64,000 bases of DNA, from NCBI GenBank assembly GCA_002104905.1, contig MCFE01000074.1, forward strand, positions 1 through 64,000, read 5' to 3'. Source of the stretch: Basidiobolus meristosporus CBS 931.73. Lineage: Eukaryota > Fungi > Basidiobolomycota. Of the stretch, positions 3,200 through 22,440 are shown piece by piece. The position numbers and the translations under genes were made by a program. A model generated the notes under the pieces. That model made no database searches and was not told the origin of the DNA. It worked only from the letters and a program-made list of their open reading frames with translations. Each line of letters opens with the position of its first letter. Within the stretch, counting starts at the first letter, position 1.

Positions 3200-3883
3200 T
3201 CAATAGCAATGTGTCTTTAAAGTCTCAGATATCCAGGCCGAATTGGAGAGCACATCGCAAAATACATGCTCTGTTTTCAAGATTGTTGAGCCCATGGTCT
3301 TGCCGTTCACAACGCCAGCAACAGAGCACAGGTTTCCATCGCAGTTAAACAATGGTCCACCAGAATCCCGGAATGCAATACCTGATACGCCGTCCGCAAC
3401 TGGCAAAGTAATACCTTCAGAAGAGTATTTAGCCTGGACTGGATACTGGTAAAACTGAAGCACCTTGGGAAGAGTGTAGTCATTTAAAAAACCCCATCCT
3501 GCGACAGCGACGTTGTCCTTTACTGCGGTACTTGTCAGGTTATAGCCCATATTGTGGCATTCGGATAGCACAGCAATCTCCATGTCATAGCATCTTGTGT
3601 CACTGTAATCGGGCGAGAACGACGACGTGATCTCAGATTTCTTGGTCGACTCCACCACGACAGAATCCTTGAAATCTGGGAGCATGACCTCACCAAGTCT
3701 ATTCTTTGCAAGGCAATGATGAGCAGTCAACACACACTTGTTACCAACCAATGCACCGGTGCAATCATCATTGACTTTGACAACCCCTCGTAGAAATGAA
3801 TTCGTCGCAAAACCTCCGTTGATGATTGCGTTCGTAGTAAGTGGTATGCAAGCAGCAGACAGAGCCAGGAATATTGGATTCCT
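3200..3883 (-). CDS. Secreted trypsin/chymotrypsin-fold (S1) serine protease or protease homolog
   Basis: Signal peptide MRNPIFLALSAACIPLTTNA followed directly by an IING mature N-terminus. Motifs CTGALV..CVLTAHHC (His), EIAVL (Asp region), VAGWG and DSGGPL (Ser). The ORF track start at 3907 is 8 codons upstream. Confidence 0.85.
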   Translation of the reverse strand, partial: RNPIFLALSAACIPLTTNAIINGGFATNSFLRGVVKVNDDCTGALVGNKCVLTAHHCLAKNRLGEVMLPDFKDSVVVESTKKSEITSSFSPDYSDTRCYDMEIAVLSECHNMGYNLTSTAVKDNVAVAGWGFLNDYTLPKVLQFYQYPVQAKYSSEGITLPVADGVSGIAFRDSGGPLFNCDGNLCSVAGVVNGKTMGSTILKTEHVFCDVLSNSAWISETLKTHCY

Positions 3884-5283
3884 CATACTATCTATGTGAG
3901 TAAGCAATAGATAAGTAAGGATAGATGTTGAATTGCAACTAAACGTTTCAAGATCTGGCTTATATGCTTAGTTGGCGCGCTACACTATTATTAGGGCAAT
4001 CTCCAGATTCGTGCGGTTTCAATTTTGGGCGTTTAAAACTTCTAAAAAACCGGTAAATAGGCTGGATAACGTCATCCTATGGCTGTCTGCGAATCAACCT
4101 GTTGGGGAGTAGAGACCCGTGTGCAGAAATAGGGTGGCTTTCTTCGTTCTCTCGATTGGTGCTACGAACGGGCTCATAATCAACTGCAGAGGTTCAAGCT
4201 ATTAAAAGTATGTTGGATACTTTGGCCATGTCATCGCTTTGGCTTGGATGAAATAGTAACTCTTCCAGTAACACACGCGCCTGTGTAAGTAAGCAAGGAT
4301 AGGTACCATTACTTACCATACATTACCGAAAATATCGACTGAGGAGGCAATCGATGTACTTATTTATCTTTTAGAACTTCTTTGGCCGTTAGCTAAGTTT
4401 ACAGCAAATGGCGGGCACTCTGGCAACAATGTTTGATAGATAGCTACACGAACAGTATTTTCCTTCCGTGTGGTTTGGCTCGAAAGTACACGATGTTGAG
4501 TTCCTATATCAGCGCTATATTCTACACTTCAACAATTTTGAAAGAATAGACATTTTCAAACTGATACCATTCTACAGAGTTTCTAAAGGCTATACAATGC
4601 GGAGATTCTGGCAAACTGTACTCTGCATATTAAGAGAGGACTAGTTATCCTGAACCAAATAACCAGCCTAGATTGTATCGTGGCAACCTATCGTTCTTTG
4701 ACATATAAATTTGGGACTATCAGTGTACTCTAGGTAGGAGCCTTTGAGCATGGTGTCGGAAAAGTGATTGACTCTATTTACCAAAAAGCTCCTTTTCTTC
4801 CCTTTCGAGGTTATGAGTGCTTGCGAACAATCTCGGGAAATACTAGTTTCTTCAATAGCGCCACCATTCTTTGTGGTAGCCTTGCCGTAGTCAATCTGTT
4901 AGATCAATTAGTGAACCAATAGATCTTCATGTTAGGCTAAATTTTCTATGAGCATAGTCTTATGGTGATTGGATGTTAGTAAACTCAATGGCTTCTCATT
5001 TTAATGTGGTTATCGTTTGCTATCTACCAAAGGCTAGGCTCAATCGAGATTGAGATATGTTGTAAACTTAAGTTCCATATATGGTATCGATGGTCATGAG
5101 TTCCAAGCAAGAGAAGACCAGGATTGACATGCTAAATTTGTACACCATCCTGGAACATGAAGCCGATTCTGGTAGGGTATTGAATTTATCGAAGCCCCAA
5201 GTTATGTCTGAAAGAAGGATGAAGTATAAATACTCTTAATAGCAGTAACTGATCAGCATCTAAAAATCAAACCATACAACGAA

Positions 5284-5823
5284 ATGGTTAAACTTGTGTC
5301 GCTTTTCTCTGCTGCAGTTTTGGCCACAACTAGTTTCTTGAGCTCAGGTATCCAGGCGCTGCCTACCGCTACCACTGCCACTCAGAGCCCATCCAACTGC
5401 ACCAAGCCAGCTGAAGTACAAGACAACCTCACCGTGCTTAGCGAGCTCTACAACGAATGCCCGCTCCAGTTCCGCTTCGACAATGGTCAGTGTACTGACT
5501 GGGCTGATGCTCGCTACTACCAACTCACCTGCTACCATACTCAGTGGTGGGGTAACGCCAAGACCTGGCCGGAGAGCGCCATGAACACCCCGGGATGGGT
5601 TGTGTCCGATGAGCCCCGTGTTCCCTCAATCATTGCCATCCAGCCAGGCTACCAGGGCTGCGATGAGTATGGCCACGTCGCGGTAGTGGAGAGCATCAAT
5701 GATGACGGCAGCGTATACACCAGTGACTGGAACTACTATATCAACGGATATGGCGGCCCATACGTGACTACTTACGTTAACTTCTGGCCTGGGGAAGGAG
5801 TATCTTTCATCTGGCATGAATAG
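5284..5823 (+). CDS. Secreted CHAP-domain peptidoglycan hydrolase, copy A (179 aa)
   Basis: Signal peptide plus GQCTDWA (Cys70), WGNAKTW, YGHVAVVE (His131) and SDWNY (Asp148/Asn150). TATAAATA about 55 nt upstream; no introns. Confidence 0.9.
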   Translation: MVKLVSLFSAAVLATTSFLSSGIQALPTATTATQSPSNCTKPAEVQDNLTVLSELYNECPLQFRFDNGQCTDWADARYYQLTCYHTQWWGNAKTWPESAMNTPGWVVSDEPRVPSIIAIQPGYQGCDEYGHVAVVESINDDGSVYTSDWNYYINGYGGPYVTTYVNFWPGEGVSFIWHE

Positions 5824-6416
5824 AATAGTCAATATACCTTGAAAATATCATTTGGCATGCCTAGACGCCATACAATTAAATTTAGTGTATAAAATAAACA
5901 AGAGTGAAAATACGGATCTTATAATTCTTGGTAACCTACTGGATAAAAGAGCATTTTCTGGGCTGTAATAGTGATGAATTGTTCAAGTTGGGAGCATATA
6001 CAAATGCAAAGAATACAGTTTCCAAATGATAAAATCCCCCATAATTGCATGTACACCATAATAAAGAATTCGGTTGAACACTAGGCATCTTGATTTTTCC
6101 GCATATCTATAACTCATACGCTCTAATCAAGGTTCAATCGGAACTGCAGTTTGTCGAGTGCAAATCTCCACCTGAATAAATATTACTACCTGGTATTCTA
6201 AAATGAGACTTTCGTGGGGTGTATGGTCCAGATCCAACCTGGAAATCCAGGGAAATTTAACTCGAATATCCTCTAGATTTGGCAGGTATCCAGAAGTACT
6301 AGGCCATATTGGGTAAGTGGATTTCAATCCAGTAATAATTGGATTGAACTGTACTCTGGTGTATAAATAATGCCATGCTAGGGCACAAATTTGACATCTT
6401 TGAATTCTCACAAAAA

Positions 6417-6956
6417 ATGGTCAAATTCACCTCGATTCTTTCTGCTGCAGTTTTGGCCGCAACTAGCTTCCTGGCCTCAGGTATCCACGCACTGCCTACC
6501 ACTACCGCTGCCACTCAGAGCCCATCCAACTGCACCAAGCCAGCTGAAGTACAAGGCAACCTCACCGTGCTTAGCGAGCTCTACAACGAATGCCCCCTCC
6601 AGTTCCGCTTCGACAATGGTCAGTGTACTGACTGGGCTGATGCCCGCTACTACCAACTCACCTGCTACCACACTCAGTGGTGGGGTAACGCCAAGACCTG
6701 GCCGGAGAGCGCCATGAACACCCCGGGATGGGTTGTGTCCGATGAGCCCCGTGTTCCCTCAATCATTGCCATCCAGCCAGGCTACCAGGGCTGCGATGAG
6801 TATGGCCACGTCGCGGTAGTGGAGAGCATCAATGATGACGGCAGCGTATACACCAGTGACTGGAACTACTATATCAACGGATATGGCGGCCCATACGTGA
6901 CCACTTACGTTAACTTCTGGCCTGGGGAAGGAGTATCTTTCATCTGGCATGAGTAA
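6417..6956 (+). CDS. Secreted CHAP-domain peptidoglycan hydrolase, copy B (179 aa)
   Basis: Same motifs as copy A. Start placed at MVKF (6417) by homology with copies A and C; TATAAATA at 6362-6369. Confidence 0.9.
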   Translation: MVKFTSILSAAVLAATSFLASGIHALPTTTAATQSPSNCTKPAEVQGNLTVLSELYNECPLQFRFDNGQCTDWADARYYQLTCYHTQWWGNAKTWPESAMNTPGWVVSDEPRVPSIIAIQPGYQGCDEYGHVAVVESINDDGSVYTSDWNYYINGYGGPYVTTYVNFWPGEGVSFIWHE

Positions 6957-7319
6957 AAAAATCAGTTCCGAACTTATACATATACCTCTTTGAACGCTAG
7001 TACTGCTCAGATAAAATCTTTAAATCGGAATTTACGTTTTGTTTCTCCAATTTATATACAATACCAATACAAATACAGGAGACAAAAGTTACTTACTGAA
7101 CGATAGTTATGCAAACAATTAAGCCAAAGTGATATGCCTTAAAGAGGACTGCACTAGATGATTACAAGCATTGATTGAACCTAACTGATAAATATAACTC
7201 GATCCACTACTTATGGTTTTGAATCGGTTGATTTCTAAAGAATTCGTAAGAATGGTGGCAAAAAGGCGGTCTTATCAACATCCATTATATTTGGTTAGAT
7301 TTGACAATCATTCAAGAAA

Positions 7320-7580
7320 TCCCAAGTATCTGATAGTTTCCTTGGAATGGTTGGAGCCCATGAACACTAGTCTGCATTTGGTAATCAGATTTCAATCCAA
7401 TGGCCGTTGAATTGAACTTGACAGCCTCATTATCTGGCGAAAACCCATGTGCAGATAAGAGCCGACTGTTGACTAATCAATATCGTCGGCCCGTATGTGA
7501 CCACTAATGTTAACTTCTGGCCCGGAGAAGGAGTATCTTTCATCTGGCATGAATAAAATAGTCAATACACCTTTAAGATA
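7320..7580 (+). pseudogene. Internally deleted CHAP relic: promoter/leader homolog fused to the last 22 codons
   Basis: 7488-7556 encodes GPYVTTNVNFWPGEGVSFIWHE*, followed by a 3' flank resembling copy A (aatagtcaatac). Upstream, ataagagccgactg..atatc resembles the copy C leader (ataagagtcgactg..gatatc), and gatttcaatcc..ttgaattgaac resembles the B/C promoters. Confidence 0.75.
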
Positions 7581-8118
7581 CCATTGAAAATACCGTGAAC
7601 TGAAATGCTAACAAATTCGAATTTCATATGTAAAATATAAAAGATCACATCTATAAATTATATTGATTTATTTCGAAACTCCTTGTAAATTTTAGACGAT
7701 CAATAAGCAGTGACCTCCAGTATATAGAACGTGAAACTAAACATGGTGATATGAAGGTTGGGCACCGTAGCAAAAAATACAGAGCATTTGTTACCTTATC
7801 TACCTATCAAGCAATCAAAGAAATACAAAAGTGTGGACGACTTTGGTGTAAAATCTTATTTTACAGTCACAACTGGTGCTTACCACATATGGGAATTCCA
7901 GTCCAGATTCAATCCAGAAATCTGAGAAACACATGAGCAAAGAACCCCTCCCCTTTTGGCAGGTATCCAGAAAACCTAAGCTATATTAGGTAAGTGGATT
8001 TCGATCTAAAGGTAATTGGATTGAATTGGATTATCTCGTTTTCCGACGAATAACCATGTATAAATAAGAGTCGACTGGTGGCTAATTCGATATCTTCAAG
8101 TCCTCCCACTTACAAACA

Positions 8119-8658
8119 ATGGTCAAATTCACCTCGATTCTTTCTGCTGCAGTTTTGGCCGCAACTAGCTTCCTGGCCTCAGGTATCCACGCACTGCCTA
8201 CCACTACCGCTGCCACTCAGAGCCCATCCAACTGCACCAAGCCAGCTGAAGTACAAGGCAACCTCACCGTGCTTAGCGAGCTCTACAACGAATGCCCCCT
8301 CCAGTTCCGCTTCGACAATGGTCAGTGTACTGACTGGGCTGATGCTCGCTACTACCAACTCACCTGCTACCATACTCAGTGGTGGGGTAACGCCAAGACC
8401 TGGCCGGAGAGCGCCATGAACACCCCGGGATGGGTTGTGTCCGATGAGCCCCGTGTTCCCTCAATCATTGCCATCCAGCCAGGCTACCAGGGCTGCGATG
8501 AGTATGGCCACGTCGCGGTAGTGGAGAGCATCAATGATGACGGCAGCGTATACACCAGTGACTGGAACTACTATATCAACGGATATGGCGGCCCATACGT
8601 GACCACTTACGTTAACTTCTGGCCTGGGGAAGGAGTATCTTTCATCTGGCACGAGTAG
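8119..8658 (+). CDS. Secreted CHAP-domain peptidoglycan hydrolase, copy C (179 aa, protein identical to copy B)
   Basis: Same motifs; TATAAATA about 60 nt upstream. Confidence 0.9.
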   Translation: MVKFTSILSAAVLAATSFLASGIHALPTTTAATQSPSNCTKPAEVQGNLTVLSELYNECPLQFRFDNGQCTDWADARYYQLTCYHTQWWGNAKTWPESAMNTPGWVVSDEPRVPSIIAIQPGYQGCDEYGHVAVVESINDDGSVYTSDWNYYINGYGGPYVTTYVNFWPGEGVSFIWHE

Positions 8659-10480
8659 AATACTCATATTTGAACCTATGCATACCCCAGTTGGATACCA
8701 TTTAGACAGAATTCCTCGCATCTCAATAAAACTATTGAATAGAACCTTATTATTAATGTCCAACACTAGTCAAAGTGATAGCCAATGGTGATACTAGTAT
8801 CTAGCTAAGGCCATTCTGTCTAGAATGCAACTGTTGTTACCACCATTGCCATATCTAAGGATACCAAAGTTTAACATTAATTCGGTTTGTATCTGCAGGA
8901 ATTCACCTTCTTTGGTTCAGTAACCATATTCAAGAGCTTCATAATATATCTCTCTTAGTAATGTGAATTCATACTTGGTTCCCGTTACTTCATCAGTTAT
9001 TTACCATTCTTATCACACCTTCCTCCTATTGCTCAAAATAGTAGCCTTCATATTCAGGAGTCATACAGTCTACTGTGCGACTTACCAGCTAAATCTCCTT
9101 CATTTCACATATTAGCTAGTACGTTACAGTTGTAGGTATTACTTCATTACTTCAGCTACGACAAAGATTCCACTTATTAGCGACAGTTTCCCTCCTCCCA
9201 TTAGCATATTGAGTATTTGCAAACCTTTTGTGTAGCCTCCTTGAATTTTTTGCAAAATTATACTCTTACAAACTTGAACGATTGAAAACAACACTTTTAA
9301 GTTTCTACGTCGACTGACCAAGATTGCAAAAGATAATTAAATATGAATGGTAACCAAACTAAGAGCACTACTCAAGTCCTTGAACTTCTTGACACCATGC
9401 CGGTTAACATACGCTTGAAAGGTAGAATTCCTGGTATATTCAAACATTTCTCCCCCAAAGAGATCAAGTAGATTACTCGTAGCATAAACCCGTCACTATA
9501 GCTACGGCTTTCCTGTTGTAAGAGCGCGGTGGGCAAGCCGGATTCAATGGGGTCATAGAGTTGCACATGCTTGTGTTGTTTGAGGGTCATTTGTGCTATA
9601 TTTATAGATACTAAGAAAAGAAGTCAACAGGTAAAATTGGCGAGTAATGTGGGATTTCTGGTCATTAATTTGACAACAGCTCTTAGATGCAAAACATGAA
9701 ACCTAGCCACTGGCTTTCTCGGAAGCTGTAAGCAATACAGGTTTGTTGGCTTTGATTTGGTAAATGTGAATATTGAGGTGTAAACACGACTTGCACGACA
9801 ATACAAGCATTTCAAGAATACTGGAGAAAAATCTAGATTGATGCTTTAGTTAGGAGTCTAAGAGTTGGCTGGTCTACAAGTAATAAATGTATGGCCTGTA
9901 GAAGATTTTGTGAAGAGTATAATGACGATGCATAGTATGGTCCTGAATTCTGGTTTTTGCTGCTTTTGATGATGATGATTTCCTTGGCCAAAGCAATGTT
10001 GATAAATCATGCTGTTCTCCGTTGTTTTCCCTTTCTATGCAACAATACCTTGAGCACTACCGATTCATTACGATTTTTATGTAACCTATGTATCACTTGG
10101 ACTATGTTATACACTTTAATTAAGATATTACAAATGTCGTTGGGGCTGTTTTCAAATTGAAATGGGGCATTCGCTTACCAACGCCGGCTTCCCTCTAATT
10201 GAGTGGATTTTCAGGAATTTGAAGGTATAGCTAATATGTTTAACAACAAACCATGTATTAACGAAAGGTGTAGCTACGTTGCTCTTACTCCATAATTTCT
10301 ACCGCATACAATCAATGCTATAGGAGAATGGTATTCATATATCAACAACTAGACGAAATATAATACGCAAATAATGCTACAGATAGGACCAAAAGCAAAC
10401 AACATAGACGCGCATGTCTTGTAACTATTTCGAGACTAAAATGACGTTAAATGGAGAACCTAGCCCTCCCTTCTCCCAGC

Positions 10481-10786
10481 TCAATGGCCAACATCGCTCC
10501 GACTTTGGCAGTGACCATGCTGTGAACTAACGCTGGAATCGTGGTAGGTAGGTGGAGGCGAATCTATCTCAGGTGGATAGTATGCAGGAAGCGTTTCACT
10601 CCGTGCCGTATGCTGACGACTTTGTGAGTTATTTTGTCGACCCGGTGGTTTGCCTTCAAATAGTGAGCATGTTATCAAAAGGGACGATTAAATACAAAGC
10701 TTACTTTTACAACACAGTACAATACCCAGCCCGAATAACGGAATGCCAAATGCGCCAACTAAGATGTAAAGAGTGCCACTGTCCAT
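10481..10786 (-). CDS. 84-aa single-pass membrane microprotein with PY motifs (2 exons: 10786-10705, 10653-10481)
   Basis: A 51-nt GTAAG..GCTCAC..AG intron joins MDSGTLYILVGAFGIPLFGLGIVLCCK (TM helix plus CC) in frame to a tail containing LPAY and PPPTY. Confidence 0.7.
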
Positions 10787-16181: not shown

Positions 16182-18736
16182 TTAGTACTGCTTGCGAGCA
16201 GCGCGAGCAACAGCCACCAAGTTCTTGAGGGCTGCTTCGGTCTCGGCCCATCCACGGGTCTTCAGACCGCAGTCAGGATTGACCCAGACAAGCTCGTGGG
16301 GCAGGAGCTTGACGATATCGCCGAGACGCGCCTCCATCTCTTCCACAGATGGGACTCTGGGGGAGCTAGAAAGAGAATTTGCCATCAGTCATTGCTGCAG
16401 AAGAAACACTGCTGAAACGCTGCATTGAGTGGTGATGCTTGACTATGCCACAGCATGCACCACTCAGCGTCACCTCGCTGCCTAATATCATCGCTTCTAC
16501 TTACTGAATGTCATAGAGTCCGGGGCCGATCCAGTTGGTGTACGAGTGAGTCTCGAAGGCCGACAACAGCTTCAAGTCCGACTTGGAGTTCTCGATGGTG
16601 ATCACATCGGCATCCATGCGCTTGATGGAGGGGAAGATGTCGTTGAAGTCAGAGTAGCACATGTGGGTGTGGATCTGGGTAGAGTCCTCAACACCAACGC
16701 TGGACAGCAAGAAGGCATCGACAGCCCATTGGAGGTATTGCTTCCACTCGTTCTGGCGGAGGGGAAGCTGCAATGTGGGGAGAAGATGGGGGGGAGGAGA
16801 GGGGTGAGGAGGGGCGGAGGAAGTGAATAGATTAGTATGATGGCCGGTCAATTGAGCAAACGACATTGCTACTTACTCCTTCACGGATGGCTGGCTCATC
16901 GATCTGGATCACTGGGATGCCTGCCTTCTCCAAGTCCTGCACTTCGTCACGAATGGCCAAGGCAAGTTGGAATGCGGTGTCCTGGCGAGGCTGGTCATCT
17001 CTGACGAAGGACCACTGAAGGCAGGTGATGGGACCGGTCAGCATGCCCTTCATTGGCTTCTGGGTGAGGGACTGGGCATACTTGATCACATCCACAGTCA
17101 TCGGCTTGGGACGGTGGATATCTCCGAAGATGATGGGTGGCTTGACGCAGCGAGTGCCGTATGAGGCAACCCAGCCGTTTTGGGTGAACACATAGCCATC
17201 CAAGTTCTCGCCAAAGTACTCGACCATGTCGTTACGCTCACTCTCCCCGTGGACGAGCACGTCAAGGCCAATATCCTCCTGGAAGCGGACGGTCTTCTCG
17301 ATCTCGCTCTTGATGAAGGAGTCGTACTCCTCTTGGCTCCAGTCTCCCTTGCGGACCTTGGAACGGGCGAGACGGACCTCCTTGGTTTGTGGGAAGGATC
17401 CGACGGTGGTGGTGGCAAACTTGGGGAGGCCCAACTTCTTCTCCTGGCTTTGTCTACGCTCGGGGAATGGCGAGTTGCGCTTGAACATCTCGGGGGTGAT
17501 GTTCTTCAAGCGGTCCTGGACAACCGGGTTGTGGATTCTTGGTGATGTGGCACGGGCTTGGATGGACTTGCTGTTGGCCTCCAACTCGGCCTTGACCGAA
17601 CCAGCATCATCCACAGCCTTGGCGAGGATGGTCACCTCCCTGAGCTTCTCAACTGCGAATGAGAGCCAGTCCAAGATCTCGGGCTCGATCTTCTTCTCTC
17701 CCTCAATGGAGTGAGGGGAGTGCAAGAGGGAGCAGGAGGGGGCAACGATCACACGGTCTCCGCCGAGCTTGCTCACAGCCTTCTGGACACTTTCCAAGGC
17801 CTTGGCGAGGTTGGTCTTCCAGATGTTACGGCCGTTGACCAAACCAAGAGAGAGGATTTGGGTGGAGTTGATCTTCTCCAACACGGTGTCCAATTGCTGA
17901 GGGGCTCTGACCAGGTCGACATGGATGGCGGCAACTGGAAGGCTGGTCAACACATCGGTGTTGTCTCCAACTTGGGAGAAGTAGGTGGCGACGAGCAGCT
18001 TCAAGCTGGATGAAGCCTTGCTCAAGGTCTCGTAGACTCCCTTGAAGCTGGACTTGGCTTGCTCGGTGAGGTCGAGGGAGAGGAACGGCTCATCAACTTG
18101 GACCCAGGTGGCTCCGGCCTCGGCCAGTCTTTGCAACAGTTGCTCGTACGCCGAGACGAGGGATGGAAGAAGGGAGAGCTTGTCGAAGTCACCGCTGTCC
18201 TTGGCGGTCTTACCCAAAAGCAAGTAGGAGATGGGACCAACGATCACGGGACGGGTGTGGATTCCGAGCTCCTTGGCCTCCAAGAACTCGTTGACAACCT
18301 TGGCCGACTTGGCAAGGGTGAACTGCTGACCCTTTTGGAACTCCGGGACAATGTAGTGGTAGTTGGTGTCGAACCACTTCTTCATCTCCATGGCTGGGAC
18401 ATCGATCTTGGCTGCTCCCTCAACAGCTGGCTTCTGGAGTCCACGACCCATGGCGAAGTAGGTCTCGAGTCCAGGTGCAAGGTGTTGGTACTTCTGGGGG
18501 ATCACTCCGAAGGTGATGGAGTTGTCGAGGATGTGGTCATAGAGGGAGAAATCACCACTGGGGATGTGGTCGATACCCTTCTCTTGTTGCAGCTTCCAGT
18601 GGCCAACTCTGATTTCCTTAGCGCCTTGGAGCAGAGCCTCTTGGGTGACCTTGCCAGCCCAATAGGATTCGATGAGTTTCTTCAACTCACGATTAGCTCC
18701 GACACGAGGGAAACCTAAGTTAGAAGAGAATACCAT
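16182..18736 (-). CDS. MET6: Cobalamin-independent methionine synthase, copy 1 (exons 18736-16877, 16767-16505, 16365-16182)
   Basis: [53 protein letters not shown]|LPLR, HTHMCYS and [11 protein letters not shown]. Two GTAAGT..AG introns (109 and 139 nt) restore the frame. Confidence 0.97.
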
Positions 18737-19390: not shown

Positions 19391-19901
19391 TAAATTAGTA
19401 TTCTAGTGAGTGACTGCTACCTAGCGTGCTATCACGGCAATTTGTAGCTTTTGGATTGGTCATTGCAGTTATACAATCCACTTCACATGCTAGGACTGCT
19501 TGCGATGGTATATTTATGATGCGTCTTCATGGCAGTTGTAGGATAAGACTGCCATGCTGGGGTATTTTACCTGTCCTATTTGAGAAAAGTCCACTCATGG
19601 AATTAGTGGACCATTAGAAGGCGTCTTGACAATCATAAGAGATCTAGAATACTATGACTCAAACCGACAACTTATCATTGAATGAATACATGCTGCACTA
19701 ATAGTAGCAGAGGTAACAAGAGGTAGTGGAGTGCGTGGCAAATGTTGGGTGGAAAGCAAGGGGAGATGATTATTTCTCTTTTACGCTATATCAGGAACCT
19801 TATAATAATTAGTCACGAATCCAATGAACGCCGCCACTGCTATAAATACTTTTGATTTGTGTATTCATACACACCGACCAATTCAGTCTACAAGCAGTAA
19901 A

Positions 19902-22440
19902 ATGGTATACTCCTCAAATTTAGGTTTCCCTCGTGTCGGAGCTAATCGTGAGTTGAAGAAACTCATCGAATCCTATTGGGCTGGCAAGGTCACCCAAGAG
20001 GCTCTGCTCCAAGGCGCTAAGGAAATCAGAGTTGGCCACTGGAAGCTGCAACAAGAGAAGGGTATCGACCACATCCCCAGTGGTGATTTCTCCCTCTATG
20101 ACCACATCCTCGACAACTCCATCACCTTCGGAGTGATCCCCCAGAAGTACCAACACCTTGCACCTGGACTCGAGACCTACTTCGCCATGGGTCGTGGACT
20201 CCAGAAGCCAGCTGTTGAGGGAGCAGCCAAGATCGATGTCCCAGCCATGGAGATGAAGAAGTGGTTCGACACCAACTACCACTACATTGTCCCGGAGTTC
20301 CAAAAGGGTCAGCAGTTCACCCTTGCCAAGTCGGCCAAGGTTGTCAACGAGTTCTTGGAGGCCAAGGAGCTCGGAATCCACACCCGTCCCGTGATCGTTG
20401 GTCCCATCTCGTACCTGCTTTTGGGCAAGACCGCCAAGGACAGCGGTGACTTCGACAAGCTCTCCCTTCTTCCATCCCTCGTCTCGGCGTACGAGCAACT
20501 GTTGCAAAGACTGGCCGAGGCCGGAGCCACCTGGGTCCAAGTTGATGAGCCGTTCCTCTCCCTCGACCTCACCGAGCAAGCCAAGTCCAGCTTCAAGGGA
20601 GTCTACGAGACCTTGAGCAAGGCTTCATCCAGCTTGAAGCTGCTCGTCGCTACCTACTTCTCCCAAGTTGGAGACAACACCGATGTGTTGACCAGCCTTC
20701 CAGTTGCCGCCATCCATGTCGACCTGGTCAGAGCCCCTCAGCAATTGGACACCGTGTTGGAGAAGATCAACTCCACCCAAATCCTCTCTCTTGGTTTGGT
20801 CAACGGCCGTAACATCTGGAAGACCAACCTCGCCAAGGCCTTGGAGAGTGTCCAGAAGGCTGTGAGCAAGCTCGGCGGAGACCGTGTGATCGTTGCCCCC
20901 TCCTGCTCCCTCTTGCACTCCCCTCACTCCATTGAGGGAGAGAAGAAGATCGAGCCCGAGATCTTGGACTGGCTCTCATTCGCAGTTGAGAAGCTCAGGG
21001 AGGTGACCATCCTCGCCAAGGCTGTGGATGATGCTGGTTCGGTCAAGGCCGAGTTGGAGGCCAACAGCAAGTCCATCCAAGCCCGTGCCACATCACCAAG
21101 AATCCACAACCCGGTTGTCCAGGACCGCTTGAAGAACATCACCCCCGAGATGTTCAAGCGCAACTCGCCATTCCCCGAGCGTAGACAAAGCCAGGAGAAG
21201 AAGTTGGGCCTCCCCAAGTTTGCCACCACCACCGTCGGATCCTTCCCACAAACCAAGGAGGTCCGTCTCGCCCGTTCCAAGGTCCGCAAGGGAGACTGGA
21301 GCCAAGAGGAGTACGACTCCTTCATCAAGAGCGAGATCGAGAAGACCGTCCGCTTCCAGGAGGATATTGGCCTTGACGTTCTCGTCCACGGGGAGAGTGA
21401 GCGTAACGACATGGTCGAGTACTTTGGCGAGAACTTGGATGGCTACGTGTTCACCCAAAACGGCTGGGTTGCCTCATACGGCACTCGCTGCGTCAAGCCA
21501 CCCATCATCTTCGGAGATATCCACCGTCCCAAGCCGATGACTGTGGATGTGATCAAGTATGCCCAGTCCCTTACCCAGAAGCCAATGAAGGGCATGCTGA
21601 CCGGTCCCATCACCTGCCTTCAGTGGTCCTTCGTCAGAGATGACCAGCCTCGCCAGGACACCGCATTCCAACTTGCCTTGGCCATCCGTGACGAAGTGCA
21701 GGACTTGGAGAAGGCAGGCATCCCAGTGATCCAGATCGATGAGCCAGCCATCCGTGAAGGAGTAAGTAGCAATGTCTTGTCGTTTGCTCAATTGACCGGC
21801 CATCATACTAATCTATTCACTTCTTCCTCCCCCCATCTTCTCCTCACATTGCAGCTTCCCCTCCGCCAGAACGAGTGGAAGCAATACCTCCAATGGGCTG
21901 TCGATGCCTTCTTGCTGTCCAGCGTTGGTGTTGAGGACTCTACCCAGATCCACACCCACATGTGCTACTCTGACTTCAACGACATCTTCCCCTCCATCAA
22001 GCGCATGGATGCCGATGTGATCACCATCGAGAACTCCAAGTCGGACTTGAAGCTGTTGTCGGCCTTCGAGACTCACTCGTACACCAACTGGATCGGCCCC
22101 GGACTCTATGACATTCAGTAAGTAGAAGCGATGATATTAGGCAGCGAGGTGACGCTGAGTGGTGCATGCTGTGGCATAGTCAAGCATCACCACTCAATGC
22201 AGCGTTTCAGCAGTGTTTCCTCTGCAGCAATGACTGATGGCACATTCTCTTTCTAGCTCCCCCAGAGTCCCATCTGTGGAAGAGATGGAGGCGCGTCTCG
22301 GCGATATTGTCAAGCTCCTGCCCAACGAGCTTGTCTGGGTCAACCCTGACTGCGGTCTGAAGACCCGTGGATGGGTCGAGACCGAAGCAGCCCTCAAGAA
22401 CTTGGTGGCTGTTGCCCGTGCTGCTCGCAAGCAATACTAA
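19902..22440 (+). CDS. MET6: Cobalamin-independent methionine synthase, copy 2 (exons 19902-21761, 21855-22117, 22257-22440)
   Basis: Near-identical inverted copy of copy 1. Introns are 93 nt (21762-21854) and 139 nt (22118-22256); YDI-H-SPRVP is restored across intron 2. Confidence 0.97.
22141..22206 (+). other. Long intronic RNA hairpin in MET6 intron 2 (mirror copy at about 16416-16481 on the minus strand)
   Basis: TGAGTGGTG/CACCACTCA, ATGCT/AGCAT and TGGC/GTCA stems around an ATA loop, extendable by GACGCTG/CAGCGTT. Confidence 0.7.

Follow-up and report, generated by a model that had tools for sequence, protein, structure and literature searches.

A tandem array of CHAP genes with Ktedonobacteria-like affinity in the fungus Basidiobolus meristosporus, probably encoding secreted enzymes against bacterial peptidoglycan

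What does a tandem array of bacterial-type CHAP genes do in a fungus, and how did it get there? The question is raised by the start of MCFE01000074.1, a fungal scaffold of 185 kb from Basidiobolus meristosporus CBS 931.73, of which the first 64,000 nucleotides (“the window”) were analyzed computationally. An initial annotation, made from the letters alone, had described three intact intronless genes for CHAP-type peptidoglycan hydrolases and proposed that they were acquired horizontally, amplified, and used against bacteria. The explanation favored here is close to that proposal: the genes probably encode secreted CHAP enzymes of Ktedonobacteria-like origin, whose most likely target is bacterial peptidoglycan, attacked for competition or food.

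The array consists of four units, one of which is dead. The three intact genes (copy 1, 5284-5823; copy 2, 6417-6956; copy 3, 8119-8658; all on the plus strand) are intronless and encode proteins of 179 residues, which in copy 1 are laid out as a signal-peptide-like segment (1-25), a Thr/Ser/Pro linker with NxT sequons, and the CHAP domain (approximately 60-179). Open reading frames and Pfam matches support the three genes, and the public annotation calls single-exon genes at the same coordinates; for copy 2, the true ATG is at 6417 and the open reading frame list starts at 6375. Copies 2 and 3 differ by four synonymous changes and encode the same protein, to which the copy 1 protein is 94% identical. 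Its 10 residue differences all fall in residues 1-47, so that the enzyme domain is identical across the three intact copies. As the initial annotation had noted, each gene is preceded by the box TATAAATA (5225-5232, 6362-6369, and 8059-8066, plus strand). The box lies 52 bp 5′ of the ATG in copy 1 and 52-60 bp 5′ across the array, and it has 15 matches in the window versus 2.6 expected. Missed at that stage was the dead fourth unit between copies 2 and 3. A relic of its upstream and promoter region (7346-7480, plus strand), recognized by repeat and alignment and with its TATA box decayed to GTGCAGATAAG, is fused directly to the final 22 codons of the gene (7488-7557, plus strand; codons 158-179 at 7488-7553 and the stop, 95% identical). 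The deletion has removed approximately 470 nt of coding sequence.

All three copies match the Pfam family CHAP (PF05257, MEROPS C51) over residues 66-150, scoring 61.5 bits (E 1e-16) where the curated cut-off is 26. The AlphaFold2 model of the domain takes on a papain-like alpha+beta fold with a predicted local distance difference test score of 96.5; the full-length model leaves residues 1-56 without structure and places the fold at approximately 60-179. The 25 top Foldseek matches are all CHAP domains, led by Staphylococcus aureus 5t1q (template modeling score 0.78, E 9e-7) and including the phage phi812 hub lysin, 2k3a, PcsB, and the CHAPK domain of LysK, and a sequence search finds the same proteins. 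In fold and catalytic layout, the fungal domain thus resembles the SsaA-type staphylococcal CHAP enzymes and phage lysins (5t1q, 2k3a, 2lrj, 9eum, CHAPK 4csh, PcsB 4cgk; template modeling score up to 0.78), which are experimentally established peptidoglycan amidases or endopeptidases. These differ from it in sequence (19-31% identity), in the Glu at their third catalytic position, and in the wall-binding modules that many of them carry.

The catalytic Cys70 lies in a GQCT motif at the start of helix 70-82, and His131 lies in a GHVA motif at the start of strand 131-138; both are invariant in two alignments of relatives. Of 43 Basidiobolus sequences, 42-43 retain these two residues and Asn150, as do all nine from Entomophthoraceae, and the three are invariant or nearly so over 52 fungal and 114 bacterial relatives. 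The catalytic set first proposed, Cys70-His131-Asp148-Asn150, is complete. Its third position varies among relatives: in the D148-W-N150 segment (E-x-N in staphylococcal members), fungi and Ktedonobacteria have Asp or Asn at residue 148, where the outgroups have Glu.

The N-terminal part of the proteins suggests that they are secreted. Residues 4-22 are hydrophobic (Kyte-Doolittle mean of 2.0 for the 12-residue window from residue 4) and are followed by the Thr/Ser/Pro-rich linker, so that the predicted signal peptide of the initial annotation is upheld by hydropathy and inspection, the means by which it was called. A hydrophobic leader is also found in 32 of 41 Basidiobolus gene models. The sequons N38-C-T and N48-L-T and the four additional cysteines (Cys39, Cys59, Cys83, and Cys126) are present as described, and paralogs have the linker NxT sequon at the same site, position 38. 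Cys59, Cys83, and Cys126 occur jointly in 21 of 43 Basidiobolus sequences and in none of the bacterial homologs, which have the catalytic cysteine only. The Entomophthoraceae proteins carry extra cysteines of their own, at sites that correspond to 42, 61, and 145. Disulfide pairing, of Cys83 with Cys126 and of others, is putative, and the extra cysteines and the sequon-bearing linker may be signs of adaptation to the eukaryotic secretory route.

The nearest non-fungal relatives are found in Ktedonobacteria, in line with the likeness to Ktedonobacteria/Chloroflexi proteins that the initial annotation had suggested. In 185,579 species genomes, an alignment-based scan found 77 loci with 43-59% identity, every one in Ktedonobacteria; an earlier scan of genome contigs with a single protein as query found no relative. 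Among 136 metagenomic matches, 62 share 70% identity or more with one of the 77 loci. Phage and plasmid CHAP domains reach at most 40% identity. The Ktedonobacteria proteins are membrane-anchored CHAP “surface antigen” proteins (from Thermogemmatispora, Dictyobacter, Ktedonobacter, Tengunoibacter, and others), which share with the fungal domain the C-terminal end PG.GVSF.WH, the catalytic Cys/His/Asn, and an Asn or Asp, not Glu, at the third position. Their architecture is different: the non-fungal relatives have approximately 300 residues, with a long disordered N terminus (approximately 100 residues in the Ktedonobacteria proteins), one internal transmembrane helix (within residues 80-160), and a C-terminal CHAP domain, whereas the fungal proteins have 179 residues, a cleavable-looking leader, a linker with glycosylation sequons, and extra cysteines.

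A maximum-likelihood tree was built from 52 fungal sequences, Ktedonobacteria, metagenome sequences, and five outgroups; a Rathayibacter plasmid CHAP used as root (branch length 2.6) broke the monophyly of the outgroups and was dropped. All 52 fungal sequences fall into a single clade (100/94), which emerges among Ktedonobacteria and metagenome sequences, and the outgroups (Firmicutes, Actinobacteria, and phage CHAP domains) are separate (100/99). On alignments and tree, the affinity of the fungal family to Ktedonobacteria is solid. The fungal genes group with one bacterial lineage to the exclusion of other eukaryotes and are stably integrated, which, strict nesting apart, is the pattern of a horizontally acquired gene.

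The same tree bears on the entry route. The immediate source could have been the lysin of a Ktedonobacteria phage instead of a cellular gene, as two metagenomic sequences that adjoin the fungal clade, P0057 and P0059, come from contigs of 12-19 kb with dense co-directional small genes and matches to packaging ATPase/terminase and endolysin, and P0059 carries an SLT domain as well. Their placement has a support of only 47-62, the other immediate neighbors (P0069 and P0054) have the cellular membrane-anchored architecture, and catalogued phage CHAP domains are far more distant (35-39%). A phage source, which would concern the route and not the function, is thus considered improbable. The phage-like CHAP contigs from the Logan metagenome collection (L089-L091, 12-19 kb) may be small Chloroflexota phages.

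The fungal domain could have been re-purposed to a substrate other than peptidoglycan, for example another compound with a gamma-glutamyl or amide linkage or a constituent of the fungal wall or spore, in which case bacterial ancestry would say little about its present role. Fungi have no peptidoglycan, the fungal lineages gained lineage-specific cysteines, and the CHAP superfamily includes trypanothione and glutathionylspermidine amidases, which are weak Foldseek matches to the model. The wall-anchored proteins of Ktedonobacteria (43-59%), however, have the catalytic residues and almost every conserved surface motif in common with the fungal domain, each of the closest relatives of solved structure is a peptidoglycan hydrolase, and leader and linker suggest an extracellular protein. 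A change of substrate is accordingly regarded as quite unlikely, and action on bacterial peptidoglycan is retained as the preferred explanation.

The family is considerably larger than the array. The B. meristosporus genome has at least 25 members and that of B. ranarum at least 19; a word-index search gave no fewer than 16 further proteins from the former species and no fewer than 15 from the latter, and look-ups of clusters and representatives added more. The initial annotation, centered on the three genes, did not see this family with its several arrays. The diverged Basidiobolus paralogs have 44-79% identity. An exhaustive search returned 934 relatives, and among the best 150 of these the only eukaryotes are Basidiobolus, Entomophthora muscae, and Massospora cicadina. 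Profile searching detected no fewer than 13 members in E. muscae and three in Massospora, several of them adjacent on contigs. A word-index search with a single Entomophthora protein reached three proteins only, compared with 15 for a profile. Neighboring E. muscae paralogs on shared contigs include those at L085 and DSO57_1007935/36/39, 1016988/97, and 1023046/47. As Basidiobolus, the fly-killing E. muscae, and the cicada-killing M. cicadina fall in one clade, the acquisition is old and predates the genus, which suggests that the CHAP capacity is old in the Entomophthoromycotina lineage. Horizontal acquisition as first proposed thus stands in its bacterial origin, but it is not specific to this array or to Basidiobolus.

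Could the genes instead be bacterial contamination, part of a chimeric contig, or members of an old, vertically inherited eukaryotic family? They are intronless and of bacterial type, as such readings would have it. They lie, however, on a fungal scaffold next to a trypsin-like gene, a GMC oxidoreductase gene, MAP65/ASE1, two MetE genes, the RNA polymerase I gene Rpa2, and copia elements, and the GMC oxidoreductase and MAP65/ASE1 genes contain introns, as their gene spans exceed their coding lengths. The CHAP genes have TATA boxes, and their composition is already host-like: their GC content is 0.54-0.55 and their GC content at third codon positions is 0.64-0.66, compared with 0.57-0.73 at third positions in neighboring genes and an overall GC content of 0.36 in the spacers. 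Given this position among spliced fungal genes and this host-range composition, contamination and a chimeric contig are excluded, as the initial annotation had expected. A second, collinear array beside a chitin synthase gene and orthologs in the independent B. ranarum assembly point the same way, and the Entomophthora and Massospora loci are not bacterial contigs either, because they are gene-poor with a GC content of 0.39-0.40. A broad vertical distribution across fungi, which the initial annotation had named as a ground for refutation, is not seen: the best 150 of the 934 matches hold no eukaryotes beyond the three genera. Both contamination and vertical descent are rejected on fungal scaffold context, host-like genes, second array, B. 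ranarum orthologs, and search taxonomy, and are considered exceedingly improbable.

The second array is located at 7785-10534 of MCFE01000158.1 (L087) and contains three CHAP genes of 177 residues, flanked by an intact KP4-like gene and the chitin synthase gene. The two arrays are collinear, including spacers and upstream flank, at 78-88% nucleotide identity, which means that a segmental duplication copied the whole locus. Between the arrays, the enzyme domain (codons 48-179) has 36-41 synonymous versus 0-1 replacement changes, which corresponds to 0.67-0.84 substitutions per synonymous site (dS), 0-0.003 per nonsynonymous site (dN), and a dN/dS of approximately 0.004; in leader and linker, dN/dS is 0.12-0.45. 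These counts show extreme purifying selection on the mature enzyme domain and argue strongly that the enzyme is functional. Within an array, dS is 0.04-0.13 and the intergenic DNA is approximately 60-80% alike. Because dS is this low despite diverged spacers, the coding regions have been homogenized by gene conversion; judged from the same comparisons, the array is older than the duplication of the locus within the genome. Homogenized copies and extreme purifying selection fit selection for a high enzyme dose, and the amplification proposed at the outset is thereby borne out. Upstream of the array in the window lies a KP4 killer-toxin-like relic (4137-4238, plus strand) of 34 residues with an in-frame stop, 74% identical to the intact KP4 gene at L087:6012-6416. 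The ancestral locus held a gene for a secreted antifungal-type protein (KP4) beside the CHAP array.

The history that would account for these observations starts with a Ktedonobacteria-like (Chloroflexota) bacterium, or its phage, from which an early member of the Entomophthoromycotina would have received the gene. In the donor group, the CHAP domain is the extracellular C terminus of a membrane-anchored protein. In the fungus, the anchor would have given way to a signal peptide that can be cleaved off and to a flexible linker with N-glycosylation sequons, extra cysteines would have been gained, and the gene would have come under a TATA promoter and taken on the codon composition of the host. 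Tandem and segmental duplication would then have expanded the family to its present size, with gene conversion keeping the coding regions of the array nearly identical. The product would be a secreted, glycosylated, single-domain CHAP cysteine amidase/peptidase that attacks the peptidoglycan of nearby bacteria. Identical tandem copies would provide a high dose of one optimized enzyme, and the diverged paralogs possibly widen the target range. Release into dung, soil, or the herptile gut would lyse neighboring bacteria, for competition or food. The herptile gut, home of Basidiobolus, holds dense bacterial communities.

Several observations weigh against this explanation. The CHAP proteins lack a wall-binding module of the kind found in many lysins (SH3b, LysM), and among CHAP domains there are amidases with other substrates than peptidoglycan, such as glutathionylspermidine amidase, although these match the model only weakly (E 0.03-0.1). 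The genome scan used one peptide pattern from a biased alignment, which favors the group already found. The backbone of the tree is weak (30-62), and the approximately unbiased test does not reject a tree in which Ktedonobacteria, with the metagenome sequences, form the sister clade of the fungi (p 0.445); the donor lineage and nesting inside Ktedonobacteria are therefore not claimed. The tree that the initial annotation had asked for thus delivers the grouping with Ktedonobacteria but no proof of nesting. Finally, the profile search gave no named match from Conidiobolus or other Entomophthorales, so that a single old transfer requires losses, or members were missed by the search.

The distribution of the family allows another role for the same chemistry. 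The enzymes could serve host interaction by degrading immune-triggering peptidoglycan fragments or pruning the microbiota of gut or cadaver, with no killing of or feeding on bacteria. The family is common to a herptile-gut fungus and the insect-pathogenic Entomophthoraceae, all animal-associated, and the biochemical basis would be the same as for bacteriolysis. The sequence holds nothing that separates the two roles, and Basidiobolus is also free-living in soil and dung (PMC9391592); a role in host interaction is hence considered rather improbable. A bolder version would combine it with a single ancient event in which a lysin was captured from Ktedonobacteria or a Ktedonobacteria phage and founded the fungal family: in animal-associated Entomophthoromycotina, the enzymes would be host-interaction factors that remove immunostimulatory peptidoglycan or selectively edit the microbiota of gut or cadaver, with diversified paralogs matched to different wall chemotypes and identical tandem copies setting the dose. 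This version is a conjecture of low probability, and lysis of bacteria for competition or food remains the preferred role.

The proposed event is of a known kind, the capture of a bacterial wall hydrolase by a eukaryote, and the proteins belong to the CHAP family by every feature examined. The oomycete Saprolegnia parasitica has a bacterial-type CHAP family of seven genes, predicted to be secreted, that is attributed to horizontal transfer and repeated duplication (PMC3681718). It is alike in all these respects and differs in its host lineage; the Saprolegnia proteins are absent from the best 150 relatives, and their acquisition was presumably independent of the fungal one. Domesticated antibacterial wall hydrolases are also known from other eukaryotes, with tick Dae2 (from Tae effectors), Trichomonas NlpC/P60, and GH25 lysozymes as examples (PMC4241558). 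They share the logic of a captured bacterial wall-cutting enzyme that is provided with a secretion signal and used against bacteria, but they belong to other enzyme families or subfamilies, come from other donors, and have demonstrated antibacterial activity, and the copy number in Basidiobolus is far larger. Descent from Tae effectors, as for Dae2, is not indicated, since the nearest relatives are the membrane-anchored Ktedonobacteria proteins, with Tae sequences themselves not directly compared. No Tae or Tse structure occurs among the 50 best Foldseek matches.

For the genome of B. meristosporus CBS 931.73, 806 bacterial-derived candidate genes have been reported by Tabima et al. (PMC7466969), whose text, the candidate gene list aside, makes no mention of CHAP. 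A 2025 study describes Basidiobolus as a bridge in gut microbiome networks (PMC12400927), and the literature search found nothing that links CHAP domains to Basidiobolus or Entomophthorales. If the preferred explanation is true, at least 25 secreted wall-cutting enzymes would give the fungus a concrete and testable molecular means to act on bacteria, and single-domain enzymes that evolved in a eukaryotic secretory setting could be of interest as practical lysins.

The remaining part of the window contains several minor features. The trypsin-like serine protease gene immediately 5′ of the CHAP array (3200-3886, minus strand) is intronless and encodes 228 residues. The two MetE genes, for cobalamin-independent methionine synthase, form a divergent pair (16182-18736, minus strand; 19824-22121, plus strand), and mirrored antisense open reading frames in both suggest an inverted duplication. 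The copia elements near the array are nested. Between 40000 and 64000, the GC content falls to 0.36-0.39, and fragments of copia-type long terminal repeat retroelements (gag, integrase, and RVT_2) lie on both strands.

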